Shown here: positions 15,127 through 27,008 of the stretch, piece after piece | How the letters are laid out: the number at the start of each line of letters is the position of its first letter | Numbering within the stretch: the first letter of the stretch is position 1 | NCBI GenBank assembly: GCA_047495785.1 | Contig: JBLDXI010000055.1 | Coordinates: 744,001 to 808,000, forward strand | Direction of reading: 5' to 3' | Length of the DNA stretch: 64,000 bases | From: Lepidodermella squamata | Taxonomy: Eukaryota; Animalia; Gastrotricha | The notes under the pieces: model-generated | What the model saw: the letters and a program-made list of their open reading frames with translations, nothing else | Told to the model about the DNA's origin: nothing | The model's database searches: none | Position numbers and translations under genes: made by a program

Positions 15127-17584
15127 TTAGTTAATATCGTCGCTAGCTGAGTTGCTCTTAGCTCTGCTGGTAGGAAACGAAGCGGTGACGATATCGCGTT
15201 CCAGGTCAAACATGGGCGAGGGAAGGCCAGGATCGGTGTACATAACAGCGCAGTAGGTTTTTCCATCGTTCAAACAACGGCCGGCTGCAACGCCAGCGAA
15301 CTCGCACAGGGTATTTCCGCCCGTTAGAACAGACACAGGAAAGCTGGCAACCTGATTCGGCGCCTTCTTGAAATCTTCAACTTTGAAAACCTAACAAAAA
15401 AATTAAAATGGATTTTGAATAATGCAAAGATCTCACGTACGTATAAGTGATCGTTGTGCTCGAGGATGGCTTTCTGGCGCCAATAGTACAACTTGGTCGC
15501 GTCGCTGATTCGAACAACCTGGCCATCAATCTGGCCATTGTAGGTCCAAAACACCGGTTTAAGCACCTTCGAATCGACTGAAACTCCGTCATTGACAGCC
15601 ATTATTGGATAGTGAGCAACGTGGCCGCGCGATGAGCAAACCAGATTGATAAGATTCACGCTTTCTGGGTCGTAGTTCGAATCATCGACGCCGTGAACAA
15701 ACGGCTCAGGGCACAGTTTCCAACGGAAGATTGGTTCAAGATTCGGATGACGACCAGCCTCGCCGCGAGTTGCTTCGGTCGAATACACGACCACGCGGTC
15801 GTTTTCAGTCGTGAACAGCCACCGCAGCTTCGAGCTAGCGACTAGACCACCCTTGAAACTGTCCTCAGCTGCGCCGATTGTAAGCAAAGTTGGCGCGACG
15901 TCTTGTGACGATGAGTTGCCAGGCATGAAATAGTAGATTCGCCGGCTCAGCTCGCCATCGTCCTCCGAGATACATTCAGCGCTAAAATAGACGACGCGAC
16001 CATTCGTGTCACTTGAAATGTGCTCGATGTCGAAACGGAATAGATCTCGCGGTGTCTTTATCGCAAACGATCTTTTCACCTGTTTAGCCGCATCAAAAAG
16101 CTAAACCGAAAACAGGATGTCAAAAAATTGGTCTTATATTGAGGTTTCTTACAGTTATTTTGTTTTCGTCGTGAAAAACAGCGAAAAGCGAGTGAACATG
16201 AAGAGTTGAAATTCGAATTTTTTGCTGAGTGAATGTCGGTTGTTGCCTTTGACTGTTAGAAGGCGAGGCGACATCAGTAGCGCTTGAACTTGGTGCCGCA
16301 TTTTCTTGCTTCGAACCTATCAGCCAATTTCTGGCAAATCCGAACAGCGACAGCCGACTCGAACTCTGCGTCTTTTGCTCTTCCAGCTTTTGTTGACGCT
16401 TGTCAGCCGTTGATCGGCCGTGATTCGCAACAGCGTTTTGAATTTGAGCCTCATTGATTTTGTTAGCACGTTTTGCCGATTTCGTCTGGGGCGTGCTTGA
16501 GACATTGTTATTGACCTTCAACTCACCGAGTTCGATGCTCTCGAGCTGGGTAACGAGCTGCCTTAAAATTGGCACTTCTTCAAAACGAAGGAATGGAGAA
16601 TCCAGAAAGTGCAAGCACTTCTGAATCTCGCTGATCTGTAGGTAAAAAATCAGAATTATTTCATCTTATTGGGAATTTGTAATTACCGCTTGATTGTAGT
16701 GAACTGAATCGATGTATAGCGCTGCGACTTCGTCCAAATCTTGGTTGAAAATTGAATCCGCCAAAAGGGATTGTTTACGCCTTTCGAGCTGAGCCGCGTC
16801 GGGTAGGTTCGAAAATTTCGCCAATTTGCCCCGCAGATTACTCGATTGCTCCTCGGCAAATTGAGACGACGTAGCCTTAATGGCTGACATTTTAGCCCTT
16901 ACAGAATTCAGAGCGCGCTGCATTGAATTTGAAATCGATTCGAGTTGCGCTTCGATGACCAATAAATCGCGCTGAATGGCATTTCCGATTGTTGTACTCA
17001 TGTCTTTCACACAAGTGTCCAATTTCAACTCAGATGGCTGCTTGGGAAAATTAACTACGAAAATTGAGTTTCAGTCATCAAACTAACCTGAGTATTCAGC
17101 TGTAGAATTTCGTTTTTGATGCGTTCCATGTGATGAAACTTGCAGGAATAACAGAAATCCTTATCGCAGTGTCGACAACGCTTCCTTTGTTCGGGCATGA
17201 ACAGGGAGTGAATGCATACATCCGCCATTTCAGCGCTGTTCGAGTCGAGTTGAAACTGTTTCGACAGCTGGTTTTGCAGCCGCATTTTCTCAACAATGCC
17301 CTGGGCCACCAAATTTGTTTGGAAAGCTTTCAGCCCGCCAGGTCCGACGTGGCTGAGTGCTCGGCATAGCGGGCAGCGAATTGAGTTCGCGTAGCCAACT
17401 TCGCATGGCAAGTGTTCCAGGCAGCCCTGGCAGAAATTATGCGGACACCCTGGTAGAATTTTTGGAGTTTCGAATAAGTTAAGGCAGATCGGACATGTTA
17501 CATCCTGAAAGCAAATTTCAGTCCAGGTTCTTTTAACATGAAATGACTTACCGATAACATATTATAAGAAGCATTCGCAGCCAT
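15127..17584 (-). CDS. TRIM-like E3 ligase A (RING, B-box, coiled coil, putative beta-propeller)
   Basis: Micro-exon MAANASYNMLS, then DVTCPICLNLFETPKILPGCPHNFCQGCL..CPLCR (C3HC4 RING), B-box-like CIH..CRHCDKDFCYSCKFHH, helical region, beta-rich C-terminus. Confidence 0.8.
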
Positions 17585-18405: not shown

Positions 18406-19456
18406 TTAGTTTTCGAACCTAGCAAAATCTTTGTCACTCGAGTTAATTTTAGGGCTCGATAAATCAGGTCCTCGATACAGCGGAACCAGCCGCGATGGGT
18501 TGAACTTCGCCATGCTTCGATAAGCACCCTGGCAAATCTGCTCCATATCGATTGTTTGCGATATTCCTGGCAGCTGGAACACCTTCCTCAGCCAACGCTT
18601 CGTGTTCGGGTAATCACTATCGTTGCGCAGAGATTTCAAATTCAATTTGCAGAGATATTCGTAAATAACAGGCAAGCGTAGTAAGAAAGGGAATGTTTCG
18701 ACATCAGCCGCTGTTATCACATCACCGGCAAGAAAGGCCCGTTTAGCTAACAAAGCTTCTACTCGGTCGAGTGATTTGAAGAACAACTTAGCATTGGTCT
18801 CAAATTCGTCTTGAGTCTTCGAATAACCGGTGCGATACATGCCGTAAGTCAGTTCTTCCCTGAGCCAGGGCAGCACACTGTCGATTTCTCCAATCAAATT
18901 TTTCGGATATAAATCAACACTCTTCGGGCCGAGAAATTTGTTGAAAACGTGGTTGAAATTGTGAACCAGATCAGCCGATTCGTTGTTGACCATTGTTCGA
19001 GACTTTGTGTCGAACAAAGCCGGAACAGTGACCCGGCCGTCGTAGCCAGGTTGACTGAGCTGGTACAGTTCGCTGAGAAGCTTAGCATTGATAACAGGGT
19101 CGACGCCAAGCTGCGGGTCGAATCGCCATCCGGTTGGCGGGTGCTCAATAACCGAATGAACCGTGACAACTTTGATGACTTTATCCAGCTTTTTCAACGC
19201 TACAGTCAGCAAAACCCGATGAGCCTAAGGTTCAAGTAGAAGATGAAGATGAAACGTTTTCTGAGTTGATGAATTTACTTACAAATGGGCACATTTGAGC
19301 AATGTAGAGGACATATCGATTTGGCTCTGGCTTGTAAATAGCATGATCCGCTGAAATGACATGGCGAAAAAGCCCCGGTGATCCAACTTTGCTTTTGTTG
19401 GCAACTTGGTTCCGGCACGCAAGAACTGTGCACAAGAACTTTGGAAATACGTTCAT
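18406..19456 (-). CDS. Glutathionyl-hydroquinone reductase (Xi/omega-like GST, YqjG/ECM4 type), 2 exons
   Basis: RYVLYIAQMCPF/AHRVL across intron 19225-19282, then GWRF..DP, LSELYQLSQPGYDGRVTVPALFD, VNNESAD, DLYP, GMYRTGY, DYPN...W, NPSRLVP..GP. Confidence 0.88.
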
Positions 19457-20866
19457 TTTTTTTATAATAATCTTTTTTATGAATGAGTGGTGACAATTAT
19501 TTGTTCACATCAAAATTACGCGTCGCACGTGACAACGCCTTTAATTGCACGTGTTTTTGCCAAGCTGATGACGCCATTGCAAAGATAAGATAAACATGCG
19601 CTGTCGTAGTTCACATCTGAATTAGCTATAGGTACCTAAGCATAATTTAACAGAAAGACGGACAGAAAGAAAGCTCACATGCGCCATGGCTGCAAGATGA
19701 TCTGCTGTTTCACAGCGGCTTGGTAAAAACACAGCGTGTCCCGTAAGTAACGCAAGCATGGAAAATCCACGGAAAAGGGTTCAGAAACTCCAAGGGTTCA
19801 GAAAATGAGAGACGAACACAGCTCATGGACAGAAAAAATTTAGAAATATTCATAAAATGACGAAAAATAATAACCAAGTATGTCAATTGTTAATGGAATT
19901 AAAAAAGTCAGGAGAAATTGGTTCCAACCGGGTAAAATACCGCAAATTACCGAACCAGTTACCATCGGGGTTTTCCGGGTCATCTCCGGTAACTTTTATT
20001 TCTTCGGTTAGATGAAAGATAAAGATAGACGGTGGAATATTCTCTCGGCAGGTTTAATTTGACAAAAATATAGTTCATTAGCTAAATAAAGCTTAAATTG
20101 GTGATGGCATCGAAAACGATGCTGGTTCCAGTTAGCTCAATTTCATTTCGATACTTGTAACAATGCGTTACAATGCGAGGTCACAATATGACTGCAATAT
20201 GACTACCATGACCTAATTGTGTAGTGGTCTCGCCCCATGTGCATTATTTTCTTTCATTTATAATTTTATCAGTTTTTTGTCGTTATGTTGTTGGGGCCCA
20301 AGTCCGAAGCGTAATGCCAGGTAATGTTTTACTTTTTGATGCCACTTGGAGACACCGGGCAGGCGTGCTATTACATGAAACAGCAAGAATGACAAGGCTT
20401 GCTCACTACGTTGTTTTGCGCTCGCACGGGCCGTTAAAATCAAGGTAAAATGGGAGAATTAGGCAGAATGGGTATGTATATCAAATCAAGTGCCAACATT
20501 TTGCGTTCGGCATTTCGGTAAAAAAGCCGAAAATTGTGCTTAATTTGGCATTTTGCTCTCAATATTTTTACCATCGTACCGGTGTTATAAATAACTTCAT
20601 TCTAAAAATAACCGGCATATTAGTCAGTGAACACACTGTATATCGGTAGGCAACGTTAAAGTCGCGGTCAAGTGAGACATTGCCTAGGGTTATTTTTAGT
20701 TTAAAAAAAACGCTTCGTATGATAATGGCAAATAACATAAGCATTTATTGTTCGCGATATGAGTTGTAGGCGTAGTAAATGGCAATATATATACAGCTGC
20801 TCTTGATATTCGAAGTTACGTCATTGCACCTCGCCTCCTCTAGCCTGAAAATGACTGAGGCTATAG

Positions 20867-22699
20867 ATGCAGTCGATTATGATGTTACCGAACCTTTTAT
20901 TTATTCTAAATTCGATTATCCTTCACGCCTATACGGCAAATGGGGATAGCATCTCCAAGTCCAAGGTCATAATTGTCTCGAACCGCCTACCTTTCACCTT
21001 TCACGATCAACGGAACTTCACGGCAAGTTCTGGCGGGCTTGTGTCTGCTCTAAGTGGGGCTAGAAAATTCGTTAACTTCAAATCATGGATTGGATGGCCA
21101 GGTGAGCATGAGTTGAAATTTTTTATGGTAACGATGTGTCTTTAAATCAAGGAATTGAACTGCGAGCAGGGCTTGAAGATCTTACGATAGGCAACATGAC
21201 GTTCGGACCTGTTAATTTGGACGATGAAACAGCTCATTTGTACTACAACGGCTTTGCCAATAGTGTTTTGTGGCCAAGCCTTCATTCAATGTCTGAAAAG
21301 GTCGACTACAAACCCTCTGTCCAATGGGACGCTTACGTAAGGGCGAACCGAGCTTTTGCTCAGAAAATCGCTGTAACAATAAGCAGTGGCGACTTGGTGT
21401 GGATTCACGACTACCATTTGATGCTTGTCCCAAAATTATTGAAGGATCTGGTTCCTTCATGGTTGAATTACAGGGTGGGATTTTTCTTTCATACCCCGTT
21501 TCCTGACCATAAATACTTCAGGTAAAGCCTCTCGTGGGAACTATTGAATAGTCATATGAGTTCATTTTAGAACGATTCCTCAATGGCAGCAATTGATCAA
21601 AGGAGTGACTCATAGCGATTTAATAGGCTTTCAAACCGAAGAGAATCTCAGTAACTTCTTGAGAACTTGCAACACGCTTTGGGGCGAAAGATTCAGGCTG
21701 CAAAAGGATGGGTTTGTATCCGCATCTCGGCGATATTTCAAGGTCACATCAGCCCCAATTGGAATTGACGTAGAAAAATTCTTCAAAATTAAGGAAACAC
21801 CGGCTAACAGGAATTCGGTGGGAGAGATTAGGAAGCAGTATTCAAGAACGCGAATTGTGCTGAGTGTTGACCGAATGGACTACATCAAAGGCATACCAAA
21901 TCGACTACAAGCGATTGATCAGCTTTTCACTAGATACCCGTCATACATCGGTAAAATTGTCTTCGTTCAAGTTCTAGTGCCGTCACGGCAAGAAGCAGCT
22001 GGCTACCGAGATCTTGCTGAATCAATACAGAAATTTACTACGCGCATAAACGACAAATTTCGCTCCCTGAATTATACGCCAGTTGAAACTATCAGCAAGT
22101 CTCTGGATCTCGAAGCTTTGATCTCATGGTACGGTGCAGCAGATTTATGTTTGATCACATCAGTTAGGGATGGTATGAATTTGGTGAGTGAATTTGTTCA
22201 AAATTCAAAAATTTAATTGTATTTTATTTGCGTTAGGTTGCGTTTGAGTACGTAGCTAGTCAATTGGACGGTAAAGGCGTCTTAGTACTCAGCAATAACA
22301 CTGGCGCCGCCCGTTACTTGGAAGGTAGGATATTTAAAAAATTAAACGGCAATATTTAGAGCGTTCTTTTGTTAGGATCGATTATCTTTGACCCGTCCAA
22401 AATTGAAAATATTGTGAAGTCAATAATCAATGGTCTCAACCAAAGCCAAGCTGCTAGCAAAGCTAGTTTTTGTAACCTGAATCGATTTGTTTCTAATCAA
22501 ACATCGATGAAATGGGCCAAGGACTTTCTAGGAGAGCTCGAGGTAAAACACTCAAATAATTTTAAGGCACCCATTAAATGTTTCCCTATTAAAGAAAATG
22601 CATAGTACAGGCGGCTTTAGTCTTGATTGGAGCTTCTTTTTCGGCGCTGTGATAGGATCGGTTATCTTCCTGGTCGCAACTCGCCGCAATAAAGTTTAA
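20867..22699 (+). CDS. TPS1: Trehalose-6-phosphate synthase (GT20, TPS1/OtsA type, no phosphatase domain) with predicted signal peptide and C-terminal TM helix, 6 exons
   Basis: VSNRLP, SSGGLVSAL, WIGWPG, YYNGFANSVLWP, WIHDYHLMLVP, FFHTPFP, DLIGFQT, PIGID, VDRMDYIKG, VPSR, SVRDGMNLV/AFEY, VLSNNTGAA. Last exon reads KMHSTGGFSLDWSFFFGAVIGSVIFLVATRRNKV*. Confidence 0.88.
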
Positions 22700-22804
22700 G
22701 TTAGAATATTTCGCGACATCTCATTTTTCCATACACTGATTATCTCAGCATATTACATTGTTAACATTTGGAGAAACAGCTATTTTATTATTCAAATAAA
22801 TTAT

Positions 22805-24109
22805 TCAATCAAGGTAAAAATACTCGTTGTCGACAGGATTTTCCAACATTTTGTATTTTCGATAATTCATAGCGTCTCTGCCCAAGGTTCGAAGCAGACT
22901 GTAAAATTTCGGAAGAAAGTCTTTAGGCAGCGGATCACTGCCGGCCATACCAGCAATACTATTTGCGTTTTCGACATCCAGTTCCAGAAATGGGAAATAC
23001 TCGGTTATGACCCAAGGCTTGCAAATATTTCCGATCCATTTTTCAGTATTTTCCGCAACTTCTTTTACCATAATTTCGTTAGCTGGTAGTTGGACTTTTC
23101 CGGAGATGGTTGCACATGCGAATTCGGCTTGAAGTCTGAGGCAAGCGATAAGGGCCACATTCGTTTTGCCAACAAAAAGAACCGACGAGCATTTAGGGTT
23201 GACCACGTTTTTGTAAAGTGGAAAGATGAATGGCATCGAATTAAAGTCGACGTCTAAATCAGCCGACAAAGGATGTAATTGGTGGAATCCTGTCGCGAAA
23301 ATAATTGCATCAAATTGATCCGAAGTGCCATCAGTAAAATATGCAGTGTCCCCATCGGCTCTGACCAATTTAGGCTTGATTCGTAAATAATCAACCATAT
23401 CATCTCGATGCCAGTAGGGCCTATGCTGACCCCATGAAATAACCGTCTTTTTCGCGCATTTTGTGAGCGAAATTGCGACATCCATGCCGCCAAATGCTGC
23501 GCCAACTACCAGGACTCGCTTGTCCGTAAATCTAGCTGGATCGTGAAGGTCATGATAGTGTATAACAGTACCGGAAAATTTGCTGATGTCGCTATCTGGT
23601 GGTATAACAGGTTTGCGATGTTGGCCCGAACACAAAATCACGCGATCAAATGTTTCATAGCTCACGTCTCCAGTAGCCAAATTCTTAATTTGAACATTCA
23701 AACTGGCTGATTTGTCCGAATTTTGGCTGATGTTTGTGACAAGACGGTTGAACCTGATAAACCTGTGCAGGTTGAACTTTGATTCAAATGCCTGCAGGTA
23801 TTCGAGCATTTCGCCTTGAGTAGGGAAGCAAGATTTCGGCGTTCCTTCAGGCCATGGAAAATCCGGGTGGATTTGCATTCCGCTCTTAAATGTATTCGAT
23901 TGAAGGCCTTGGTACATGCTGCTTTGTATCGGAAAGCCGTCCTTCGAAGTATCGGGCTTATTCGAGCTCAACACCCATTCGCCGCCGATTTGATTTGAAC
24001 CTTCATAACAAATAACCTCGAGTTTGGGTATAGCCTCGGCCAAGCGCCTTTGAATGGTATACAGGGTGACCAATCCAGCTGGCCCAGCGCCAATAACAGC
24101 AATTCTCAT
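22805..24109 (-). CDS. Flavin-containing monooxygenase (class B FMO), single exon
   Basis: N-terminal RIAVIGAGPAG (FAD), GGEW, SSMYQGL.SN, FSGTVIH FMO motif, second Rossmann VLVVGAAFGGMD, DAIIFATGF. Confidence 0.9.
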   Translation of the reverse strand: MRIAVIGAGPAGLVTLYTIQRRLAEAIPKLEVICYEGSNQIGGEWVLSSNKPDTSKDGFPIQSSMYQGLQSNTFKSGMQIHPDFPWPEGTPKSCFPTQGEMLEYLQAFESKFNLHRFIRFNRLVTNISQNSDKSASLNVQIKNLATGDVSYETFDRVILCSGQHRKPVIPPDSDISKFSGTVIHYHDLHDPARFTDKRVLVVGAAFGGMDVAISLTKCAKKTVISWGQHRPYWHRDDMVDYLRIKPKLVRADGDTAYFTDGTSDQFDAIIFATGFHQLHPLSADLDVDFNSMPFIFPLYKNVVNPKCSSVLFVGKTNVALIACLRLQAEFACATISGKVQLPANEIMVKEVAENTEKWIGNICKPWVITEYFPFLELDVENANSIAGMAGSDPLPKDFLPKFYSLLRTLGRDAMNYRKYKMLENPVDNEYFYLD

Positions 24110-24786: not shown

Positions 24787-27008
24787 TTAAAACAACATTT
24801 CGGCAATTTCAATTTTGTCAGAATCGTAGACAACGCAAATGAAGACTTTGTCACCATCAGCCGGTGAAACTTCATCTTTTTTAAAGGCAGAGAATGCCTT
24901 TACTTTTCGAGGATAGCCGTTCGAGAGACCGGCAGGTAGGGCTGAAACTAGTCTCGGAGCTGTGTGGCCAAAGATCGAGTACCTCTGCGAAAGAATAAAA
25001 ATTGATGCTTTTCGAAGGATAAATCGAAGGCGAAAACTTTACGCAAATGAAGCCGTTGCGGGCGTAAAGAATGTCATGCCCATCCAAGACACAGAGCGTG
25101 TTAGTTTCGGACATTTTGAAGTAGTCATCGTCCCAAGCAGCCGAAACTTTCGTCTCCCATTGCTCGCGGTCGCATTCATGAGTTTTGAGGTAAACCTTCA
25201 GCGAGTTCAAATTACCGCTGTTTGAGTAGAAAATCGTCGTAGACAGGTCGCTGTTGAGACCAGGCGTCATGCAGTGAACGACGCACTCCTTGCCGAGATG
25301 CCGCCAGCGTTTAACCACCGAAGTTCGCTTCGTAGTCGAGTTGCAGTACTCGCCACCCTCGTACGCTACGATGTTGTCATCACCCTGGGTTGTAACAACC
25401 CAGACCGAACTTCCGGTCCAAAGCGTTGTCAAGCCACGGAAACTTTCTTGCGATTCGCCAATGGCAAATAGAGCCGGTTCGAGCGATAAATGGGAGAAGG
25501 ACGAACTGAGCGCAGTTCCGAACGCGAAATGGCAAACTTGGCGGCCCTTTGCATTTCGAGAATTGCGAACATCAGCGGTCACGTAACAAATTTCCTTGCA
25601 ATCGATAGCGAAGCCATCAACTTCAAACTTCGTCAAAACTGACGGCTTTAAAATTGTGATGTGTTTGAAAATTTCGCCGCCAGTTGTCGCGCACTAAAAT
25701 TAGTCGAAAAAATGTAAAAAATCGAAAGAAATGCTCTTTTTACTCACCGCAATTTTGTTTTTGCCGTACAAAATGGCGAAAATTCCCCGTTTAGGAACAG
25801 CCAGGATTTGCTTGACTTCTATCAGAGTCGTGACGTGATTGATGTTTTGATACATGGATGTATTTCTGGCTTGAAATCCAGACGCCGTCGTTTGACAAGC
25901 TACGTCATTTACGCTGCAGCCATCTCGATCCGGGTCGATGGCCTCATTCGGATTTTCTGGGTCAATTAGCTTGTTTTTACCCTCGCCCAAGGCCGAAGCT
26001 TCGATTTCGATGTTACCAAGAGACAGAGATTTCAGCGAACCCAATTTAGCCATCAATTCTTTATTCGCGTTGTATCGAATCCAATGGCCGTGTTTTCGAC
26101 TGAGTGACTTCAAACGCTGGTTAAAACTCTGAAGGTTCGCCACGTCCTCATAGAGCTCGCAAACCTTAGCCAAATCTTGCTTGAAAACCGAAGTATTGGC
26201 CAGATGTTTGATTCGATCCTCAAGACCTCGGGCAGGGTCGAAGTTCTTCAAATCTTCTGTGTACTTGAGCCACAAATCTTCCGACAACTGCTTGGATTGC
26301 TGGATGATTGTCTGCGTCTTTTTAACCAGCTCGCTTGTCGCCTTTTGAATAGACTCTTCGACCTGACCTATTTCAGTCTCGATTGATTGCAAATCGTGCT
26401 CCAAGGCTGTTCGAGCGCCTTTCTTGAACATGTCAACCCGACCACGTTCATCAGGGAAATTCTATAAATCGACAAACTTTAAAAATGAACCTGCGAATTT
26501 TTAGACTGACCTTGGCAAGATCGAGGATTTCCTCTTTGATTTGTTCAATGTGGCGGAATTTGCATGATTCGCAGAACAAGTTTTCGCAGTGATCGCATTT
26601 TTCTCGATCGCCCACAAGCAACAGCGTGTGAGGGCACTGCGTCCATCCTTCAACGCAGGTCGTTTCCAAGATTGCTTTGCGTTGCGCCGACATTTTCTCG
26701 ACGATATTCTGTACAATGATGTTAGTCGCAAAGGCGTCAACTCCCGCCTCGGTCAACGAATTCGACGAGCGGCATTCTGGGCACAGAATTGTCGCTTTGT
26801 CTGGTGAAATTACTGAGGAATTGTTTTGAAGTTGCTGCAAACAGCTCAAGCAGAAAGTATGCTGGCAAACTGGCATAAGTTTTGGGACTTCGAAAGGATT
26901 TAAGCATATCGAACAAGTTAAATCCTAAATATCAGGAATTTATCGACTGGGCGATAGAGGTGAGAAATCGAAACTCACCGCTAAGAGGTCTGTAGATGTG
27001 TTCATCAT
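24787..27008 (-). CDS. TRIM-like E3 ligase B
   Basis: Micro-exon MMNTSTDLLA, DLTCSICLNPFEVPKLMPVCQHTFCLSCL..CPECR, B-box CPH..CDHCENLFCESCKFRH, coiled coil, beta-rich C-terminus; last exon ends ..IEIAEMLF*. Confidence 0.8.

Follow-up and report, generated by a model that had tools for sequence, protein, structure and literature searches.

A trehalose-6-phosphate synthase gene in a gastrotrich genome

In the genome of the gastrotrich Lepidodermella squamata, a gene encoding trehalose-6-phosphate synthase (TPS) was found on the + strand at 20867-22699 of a 64,000-nucleotide stretch of contig JBLDXI010000055.1 (assembly GCA_047495785.1; positions 744,001 to 808,000 of the forward strand). This whole stretch is called the window here, and nucleotide positions refer to it. 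Translation of 20400-23200 revealed six exons separated by five GT-AG introns and a product of 525 amino acids (aa), whose reading frame is closed only by splicing. The catalytic domain of the product belongs to family GT20; a hydrophobic leader stands before it, and a predicted transmembrane (TM) helix with a basic tail follows it on a separate last exon. The gene model consists of the following parts:

20867-21101, + strand: exon 1, leader and first GT20 strands (KVIIVSNRLP, SGGLVSAL, WIGWPG)
21102-21151, + strand: intron 1, 50 nucleotides (nt), GT-AG, 32% GC
21152-21521, + strand: exon 2, GT20 N-domain including Y110, D165 and H192; Pfam 121.7 bits; aligned to Candida Tps1 5HUT
21522-21570, + strand: intron 2, 49 nt, GT-AG
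21571-22183, + strand: exon 3, GT20 C-domain including R303, K308, R341 and D402-L406; Pfam 192.9 bits; PDB 5HVO at E = 6.9e-44
22184-22236, + strand: intron 3, 53 nt, GT-AG
22237-22324, + strand: exon 4, E410 and the altered motif LSNNTGAA (22288-22311)
22325-22375, + strand: intron 4, 51 nt, GT-AG
22376-22542, + strand: exon 5, final GT20 helices, with the Pfam profile ending at 472/473
22543-22594, + strand: intron 5 (predicted), 52 nt, GT-AG, 29% GC
22595-22699, + strand: exon 6, linker, TM helix, basic tail and stop codon; single-copy in the genome

The GC content tracks this model, with 39-50% in the exons (45% in exon 6), 23-37% in the introns and 27% in the 3' flank.

Database searches were carried out exon by exon, and the joined 525-aa model was used for local statistics, alignments and trees. 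The Pfam family PF00982 covers exons 2, 3, 4 and 5, the scores of exons 2 and 3 standing far above the cut-off of 32.5 bits, and the start of the domain in exon 1 is recognised by alignment only. Because profile position 472 of 473 coincides with the end of exon 5, the catalytic domain stops there and exon 6 is an add-on. Near-invariant columns, defined as at least 90% conserved in 104 full-domain homologues, are kept at 51 of 53 positions, the exceptions being T215 and D441. In Candida Tps1, UDP-glucose and glucose-6-phosphate are contacted by Y89, D143, H171, R280, K285, R318, D379, M381, N382, L383 and E387 (PMC5527307). All of these contacts were found in the alignment as Y110, D165, H192, R303, K308, R341, D402, M404, N405, L406 and E410, respectively. 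Two motifs outside this contact set are rewritten, QTEENLSNF standing for HTYDYARHF and LSNNTGAA for LSEFTGAA. Since all donor and acceptor contact residues are kept, the ordinary trehalose-6-phosphate synthase reaction is the default, and the gene is predicted to encode a catalytically competent GT20 enzyme that forms trehalose-6-phosphate from UDP-glucose and glucose-6-phosphate. For the same reason, the new glucosyltransferase or sensing role put forward in the original prediction, which had been made from the DNA alone, found no support.

Pfam detected no PF02358 phosphatase domain in the synthase gene, and a six-frame, exon-by-exon search of the assembly, in which short exons could hide a gene, detected no PF02358 trehalose phosphatase either. 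These results bear out the earlier description of the protein as a synthase-only GT20 enzyme of the fungal Tps1 type and not an animal fusion of TPS with a trehalose-6-phosphate phosphatase (TPP). We are highly confident that the synthase gene is real and that its GT20 domain is of the active type.

Hydrophobic leader and transmembrane exon

When hydropathy was calculated over the joined model (Kyte-Doolittle, 19-residue windows), the two top peaks of the protein fell at its two ends, the C-terminal helix being the highest. The following features were assigned to the ends:

20867-20944, + strand: hydrophobic signal-like leader MQSIMMLPNLLFILNSIILHAYTANG, aa 1-26, Kyte-Doolittle peak 1.68
22628-22681, + strand: predicted TM helix W503-T520, 18 residues, Kyte-Doolittle peak 1.96
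22682-22699, + strand: basic tail RRNKV and stop codon, after the helix WSFFFGAVIGSVIFLVAT

Both the leader before the GT20 domain and the last exon with its TM-like helix and basic tail are thus present where they had been predicted, and both are unique among the relatives of the gene. The leader has the hydrophobic core LLFILNSIIL, and the -3/-1 rule points to a possible signal-peptidase site between A-N-G and D. At the sequence level, the single helix and its net positive C-flank (RRNKV) conform to a stop-transfer segment. In the six-frame open reading frames (ORFs) of the window, the hydrophobicity of the exon 6 tail is matched by 1.8% of 34-residue tails, or by 0.2% if a basic, acid-free end is also required, and a comparable hydrophobic N-terminus occurs in ~4% of ATG-started ORFs. 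The combination of leader and TM helix was seen in none of the 150 nearest homologues, the closest tree neighbours having neither end, and no second copy of either the leader region or the TM exon was found in the genome. Among the 150 nearest GT20 matches, the only clear signal-like N-terminus (MAQRLLLLALIALLAGG...) belongs to P0066, a very long multidomain protein of 1595 aa.

In-frame ATGs in exon 1 occur only at codons 1, 5 and 6, and the first domain strand, KVIIVSNRLP, starts at residue 33. Since codon 6 is the last in-frame ATG before this strand, the leader has to be part of any product that starts at an exon-1 AUG and contains the full domain. With an unseen upstream exon, the leader would become an internal membrane segment, and such an exon or an odd splice could remove it. 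Two acceptor-like sites lie just 5' of the start codon:

20829-20843, + strand: pyrimidine-rich acceptor-like site cctcgcctcctctag, by direct reading, a possible spliced-leader acceptor
20861-20866, + strand: acceptor-like ctatag abutting the start codon, its TAG being an in-frame stop directly before the ATG at 20867

Acceptor-like sites 0-2 nt 5' of the ATG were also found in other genes of the window. An out-of-frame upstream ATG at 20851 (+ strand) opens a 32-codon ORF that ends at 20949 and overlaps the main start; this ORF could be regulatory, or could be lost through trans-splicing at 20866. At the other end of the gene, an AATAAA at 22688-22693 (+ strand) overlaps the last sense codons (AAT AAA) before the TAA stop, and a second AATAAA is located at 22795-22800. 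Use of the signal inside the last codons would give a very short 3' untranslated region.

These features also bear on another explanation, namely an ordinary soluble cytosolic synthase, in which intron 5 is retained, or in which the hydrophobic ends are incidental and the gene model is wrong in its first and last parts. Exon 5 already completes the GT20 profile, and retention of intron 5 would add only ~20 residues in frame before a stop at TAG 22603-22605. In addition, exon 6 is a gene-model prediction from sequence, and the upstream ATG and alternative acceptor are present at the 5' end. However, the 52-nt GT-AG interval fits the narrow size range of the other introns and has an intron-like GC content, exon 6 has an exon-like GC content with an AATAAA on its last codons, and a tail of this kind has a chance of 0.2-1.8%. 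Any exon-1 AUG giving the full domain also includes the leader. We regard a soluble enzyme as improbable and predict, with moderate confidence, a membrane-bound product.

Sequons and predicted topology

Seven N-x-S/T sequons were found in the domain: NFT50, NMT93, NLS227, NYT369, NNT426, NQS457 and NQT476. Six of them (NFT, NMT, NYT, NNT, NQS and NQT) had been listed from the DNA and were recovered here, and the seventh, NLS227, had been missed. Per equal length, the 104 homologues average 1.5 sequons and have at most 5.9, so that none of the 104 reaches seven. Five of the seven sequons lie at variable polar columns, and the other two overwrite conserved residues, namely Y (91/104) at 227 and E (82/104) with F (77/104) at 426-427. 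The latter replacement is the change of LSEFTGAA to LSNNTGAA that had been noted originally, and the alignment upheld it. The sequon excess might fit a domain exposed to the lumen of the endoplasmic reticulum (ER), for which it is soft evidence.

On the grounds of hydropathy, the charge rule and the sequons, a type-I topology with a lumenal domain is plausible. We propose that the hydrophobic leader and the separate last TM exon would have been gained in the host. The leader would take the chain into the ER, the catalytic domain would lie on the lumenal side of the early secretory pathway, where it would be N-glycosylated, and the short 18-residue helix and the RRNKV tail would retain the enzyme in this compartment. 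From lumenal (imported) UDP-glucose and glucose-6-phosphate, the enzyme would form trehalose-6-phosphate, and an unspecific lumenal phosphatase would then complete trehalose. As regards the donor, the glucosyltransferase UGGT was found in the genome at 3.8e-144, which by established knowledge of this enzyme implies a UDP-glucose pool in the ER lumen. We put the probability of the whole chain, that is, a type-I membrane-bound lumenal enzyme of the early secretory pathway making trehalose-6-phosphate, at about 45%, and the lumenal orientation of the catalytic domain on its own likewise falls just short of an even bet.

Several observations count against this proposal. A basic n-region is missing from the leader, whose core is broken by Asn and Ser. 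A stronger-looking acceptor (to 20843) and an out-of-frame ATG stand just 5' of the start, which is a caveat for the start site. The sequon excess is modest with respect to the composition of the protein itself, shuffled residues giving 3.4 ± 1.7 sequons (P = 0.04). No canonical ER retrieval motif was found in the protein, and no protein from the synthase gene was found in either protein collection, exon 3 being the part searched. Moreover, the TPS enzymes known to us all use cytosolic substrates.

The same enzyme could instead face the cytosol. The C-terminal helix would then be a post-translational tail anchor in the membrane of the ER or the outer membrane of mitochondria, the N-terminal stretch would serve as a reverse signal anchor or have no targeting function, and cytosolic substrate pools would be used at the membrane surface. 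Tail-anchored proteins, above all those of the mitochondrial outer membrane, typically show a moderately hydrophobic helix close to the C-terminus, followed by a basic tail. The helix of the synthase is moderately hydrophobic, ends 5 residues from the C-terminus and has a basic tail. It lies, as a single TM segment, within about 30 residues of the C-terminus, as expected of a tail anchor; the lack of an N-terminal signal, also expected of one, is contradicted by the hydrophobic N-terminus if this acts as a signal. The conservation of all substrate contacts also speaks for the cytosol, where both substrates are abundant, as does the missing basic n-region of the leader. On the other side, a hydrophobic N-terminus, as the first part of the chain to emerge, would be expected to recruit the signal recognition particle, the positively charged flank of the helix is the one on its C-side, and a sequon count above those of all 104 homologues has no explanation in a cytosolic protein. 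On balance, we consider a cytosol-facing enzyme unlikely, though the most serious competitor of the lumenal one.

It is much less likely that the domain is displayed on the cell surface in a new role (binding, sensing or a different acceptor), either with a glycosylphosphatidylinositol (GPI) anchor replacing the helix or as a type-I protein of the plasma membrane. The signal-like N-terminus and the C-terminal series of S-T-G-G, a short spacer of 4-5 residues and an 18-residue hydrophobic stretch do resemble a GPI signal, and sequons have replaced parts of two conserved motifs (N for Y at 227 and NN for EF at 426-427). However, as generally understood, RRNKV after the hydrophobic stretch is atypical of GPI signals and an 18-residue helix is short for a plasma-membrane span. 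In addition, the retention of all donor and acceptor contacts argues for the original reaction, the substrates of which are scarce outside cells. The lumenal type-I enzyme making trehalose-6-phosphate remains the reading that we prefer.

Fungal-type origin of the synthase gene

When exon 3 was compared with solved structures, fungal Tps1 came first (5HVO, 6.9e-44), against 7.2e-26 for E. coli OtsA. A HMMER search with exon 3 against 1.84 billion cluster representatives gave 5075 relatives, none of them closer than 40% identity, indicating that no orthologue from other organisms is on record in that collection. A word-indexed protein search with exon 3 returned only 3 weak partial matches; its length window bars full-length proteins, and the small number of matches is explained by a sequence too divergent to share 5-residue words. 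The identity of the best match, from Coemansia, is 40% for exon 3 and 43% for the domain, and a long stretch, LDDETA.LYYNGFANS.LWP, is near-identical in the two. The top matches with names come from Coemansia, Smittium, Podochytrium, Physocladia, Allomyces, Racocetra, Lentinus and Hortaea, so that the nearest named relatives are all fungi, in line with the fungal TPS1-like pattern recognised in the original prediction. Farther named matches belong to a diplonemid, a heterolobosean, red and brown algae, Chara and bacterial bifunctional enzymes. No animal protein occurs in the 30 top matches whose names were checked, nor in the 120 best relatives of P0020, an orphan TPS-TPP protein of 724 aa that itself has no relative above 48% identity among the 120 best matches listed. 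An animal-type TPS is not supported, as there is no TPP domain and no animal sequence among the near matches.

Phylogenetic analysis, in which no animal TPS sequence was included, placed the gene next to fungi. In a 105-row tree (LG+C20 PMSF, quick search), it falls in a clade of 14 rows, the named ones all being fungi (SH-aLRT 97). In a 50-row tree from a full IQ-TREE run (LG+F+G4), it groups with a divergent paralogue from Hortaea and P0020 (95.5/94), and this trio joins the fungi (89.7/88). Identity is 43% to fungal rows and 34-37% to bacterial-type rows, and relative to the non-animal homologues the gene has indels of only 1-4 residues. The fungal relatives of the gene carry both PF00982 and PF02358. 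The 120 best relatives of P0020 come from early-diverging fungi, which are its nearest named kin, slime moulds, oomycetes and algae, and nearly all of them have both domains as well, suggesting that the donor gene was probably a TPS-TPP fusion that has lost its second half in this genome. Derivation from a TPS-TPP gene of an early-diverging fungus, minus its phosphatase-like half, is the most likely course of events judging from these comparisons.

A non-animal, fungal-type origin is in our view probable. Two results detract from it: the fungal placement is made on a long branch (1.0-1.6 changes per site) beside two other long branches, and the approximately unbiased (AU) test does not reject (p = 0.126) a placement outside the eukaryote-type group, which costs 21.6 log-likelihood (lnL) units. 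Transfer from a fungus is the best-fitting history, as the original prediction of horizontal acquisition had it, without being statistically secure.

The same results leave room for an old, fast-evolving GT20 lineage, by opisthokont ancestry with loss elsewhere in animals or from another donor, whose fungal affinity would be a long-branch effect. Such a history would fit any of the topologies discussed above. In each tree, the end branch of the gene is the longest or second longest, and its companions, the divergent Hortaea paralogue and P0020, are two long orphan rows. A basal position next to the bacterial-type group is the one that the AU test does not reject, and the identities to fungal and bacterial-type rows are only a few points apart. 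Against this, every search method ranked fungi first, the free maximum-likelihood (ML) tree is better by the full 21.6 lnL units, the long near-identical stretch is held in common with Coemansia, and animals are missing from both the 30 named top matches and the 120 best relatives of P0020. Furthermore, pan-metazoan TPS genes have been placed far from the fungal group (Hara et al. 2021, PMC8277472). We judge an old lineage of this kind rather unlikely and retain a fungal-type source as the working explanation.

Residence in the animal genome and pathway context

The contig that carries the gene is longer than 800 kb and belongs to a 121.2-Mb assembly of 151 contigs; the GC content is about 42-43%. 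A Cys-loop receptor gene lies on the same contig, and RING/B-box genes with ~50-nt introns are located nearby. The GC content, GC3 and codon usage of the synthase gene are within the range of its neighbours. Contamination was ruled out by the length of the contig, the Cys-loop receptor and RING/B-box neighbours, the five host-size introns and the host-like codon usage. The host-type introns, composition and animal neighbours indicate a long residence in the animal genome.

The gene is the sole GT20 locus of the 121-Mb genome. Trehalase is common in animals, and no PF01204 trehalase of family GH37 was detected in the assembly by the six-frame, exon-by-exon search, in which short exons could hide this gene just as they could the phosphatase gene. 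The detection of UGGT and of GT20 itself serves as a positive control for this kind of search. Provisionally, the missing phosphatase and trehalase could reflect either true loss or a limit of search sensitivity.

Comparison with known trehalose-6-phosphate synthases

Fungal Tps1 and the "complex synthase subunit" of TPS-TPP type from early-diverging fungi (Coemansia KAJ2159406.1; structures 5HVO, 5HVM, 5HUT and 6JBI) are the systems most like the gastrotrich enzyme. They share an end-to-end GT20 domain with the substrate residues kept, show the highest similarity found (43% over the domain) and form the nearest clade in the trees. Unlike these fungal relatives, the gene has no PF02358 half and possesses the leader, the TM exon, the seven sequons and the rewritten motifs QTEENLSNF and LSNNTGAA. 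The divergent paralogue from Hortaea werneckii, RMY52027.1, groups with the gene in ML trees and shares its GFQT motif variant; however, RMY52027.1 and P0020 have neither leader nor TM helix and are only 37-38% identical to it, and their grouping with the gene may be long-branch attraction.

E. coli OtsA (1GZ5, 1UQT) is likewise a synthase-only GT20 enzyme of similar size with the same catalytic residues. It differs in that it matches exon 3 more weakly than fungal Tps1 does (7.2e-26 versus 6.9e-44), and in that it is soluble and paired with a separate phosphatase, OtsB, whose family was not detected in this genome.

Compared by description, AvTpsA/B of bdelloid rotifers offer a parallel among animals, being TPS of non-animal type (fungus, plant or protist) in a small invertebrate, with the phosphatase domain lost and no genomic TPP (PMC4498783; PMC8277472). 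The bdelloid genes have at most one intron and are accompanied by bacterial-type trehalases, whereas five host-type introns and no detected GH37 were found here. No signal peptide or transmembrane segment is mentioned for the rotifer TPS (PMC4498783; PMC8277472). The pan-metazoan TPS-TPP enzymes of insects and other animals belong to the same family and catalyse the same first reaction; by their description, they are ~800-aa fusions with a TPP domain and lineage-specific TPS insertions (PMC8277472). The gastrotrich protein has no TPP domain and, relative to non-animal homologues, only the indels of 1-4 residues mentioned above. A predicted location outside the cytosol is found for Rhizophagus clarus NLS_7749, a GT20 TPS/TPP listed among predicted secreted effector candidates (PMC4746824). 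Likened here by description, this protein is fungal and a bifunctional TPS/HAD-hydrolase, its secretion is a computational prediction, and no anchor is mentioned in the part of that source consulted (PMC4746824).

Implications of a membrane-bound synthase

On several occasions, small desiccation-tolerant animals (rotifers, tardigrades and nematodes) have acquired genes for trehalose synthesis by transfer. Transfers of TPS genes into small animals are thus already on record (PMC4498783; PMC8277472), and the gastrotrich case would add a phylum to the animals with a transferred TPS. More unusual is the architecture, in which an otherwise intact enzyme bears the hallmarks of a secretory-pathway membrane protein. 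To our knowledge, every trehalose-6-phosphate synthase studied is cytosolic. In the literature, we found no membrane-bound or lumenal TPS, only the single predicted secreted fungal candidate named above, and no work on gastrotrich trehalose metabolism.

If the domain is truly lumenal, the case would show that an enzyme forming a sugar phosphate can be relocated to the ER or Golgi once it has been transferred. A lumenal domain would also offer a transporter-free route for trehalose to the outer membrane face, which is a long-standing requirement in models of desiccation protection. At its fullest, this idea would have a domesticated fungal Tps1, equipped with a signal peptide and an anchor, making trehalose-6-phosphate and thence trehalose in the secretory-pathway lumen of an animal whose genome has no dedicated trehalose phosphatase or GH37 trehalase, so that trehalose is loaded without a transporter onto the lumenal or extracellular side of membranes, into secretions and into resting eggs. 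We offer this extended scenario as speculative and unlikely to hold in full. If the domain faces the cytosol, the protein would still be a foreign enzyme tethered to a membrane through a captured exon.

Neighbouring genes

Just upstream of the synthase gene, an ORF at 18406-19212 (- strand) resembles glutathione S-transferases (GST; PF13410 and PF00043), and an Xi-class enzyme is suspected. On the other side, an intronless gene for a 434-aa protein like flavin-containing monooxygenases (FMO) occupies 22805-24109 (- strand); it is convergent with the synthase gene, and its opposite-strand ORF begins ~100 nt past the synthase stop. The best named relatives of this FMO-like protein are of the bacterial trimethylamine monooxygenase type at ~30% identity, and three unnamed ENA proteins reach 41-43%. 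The sole animal match listed covers 28% of the query. The gene is a second candidate of foreign origin.

The GST-like, synthase and FMO-like genes are flanked by two paralogous RING/B-box genes at 15324-17411 (- strand) and 24881-26876 (- strand). Between these paralogues, identity is 42% in the RING/B-box parts (E = 1e-25) and 23% in the C-terminal parts (E = 1e-4). Two tandem RING/B-box paralogues therefore enclose three genes of possible non-animal type.

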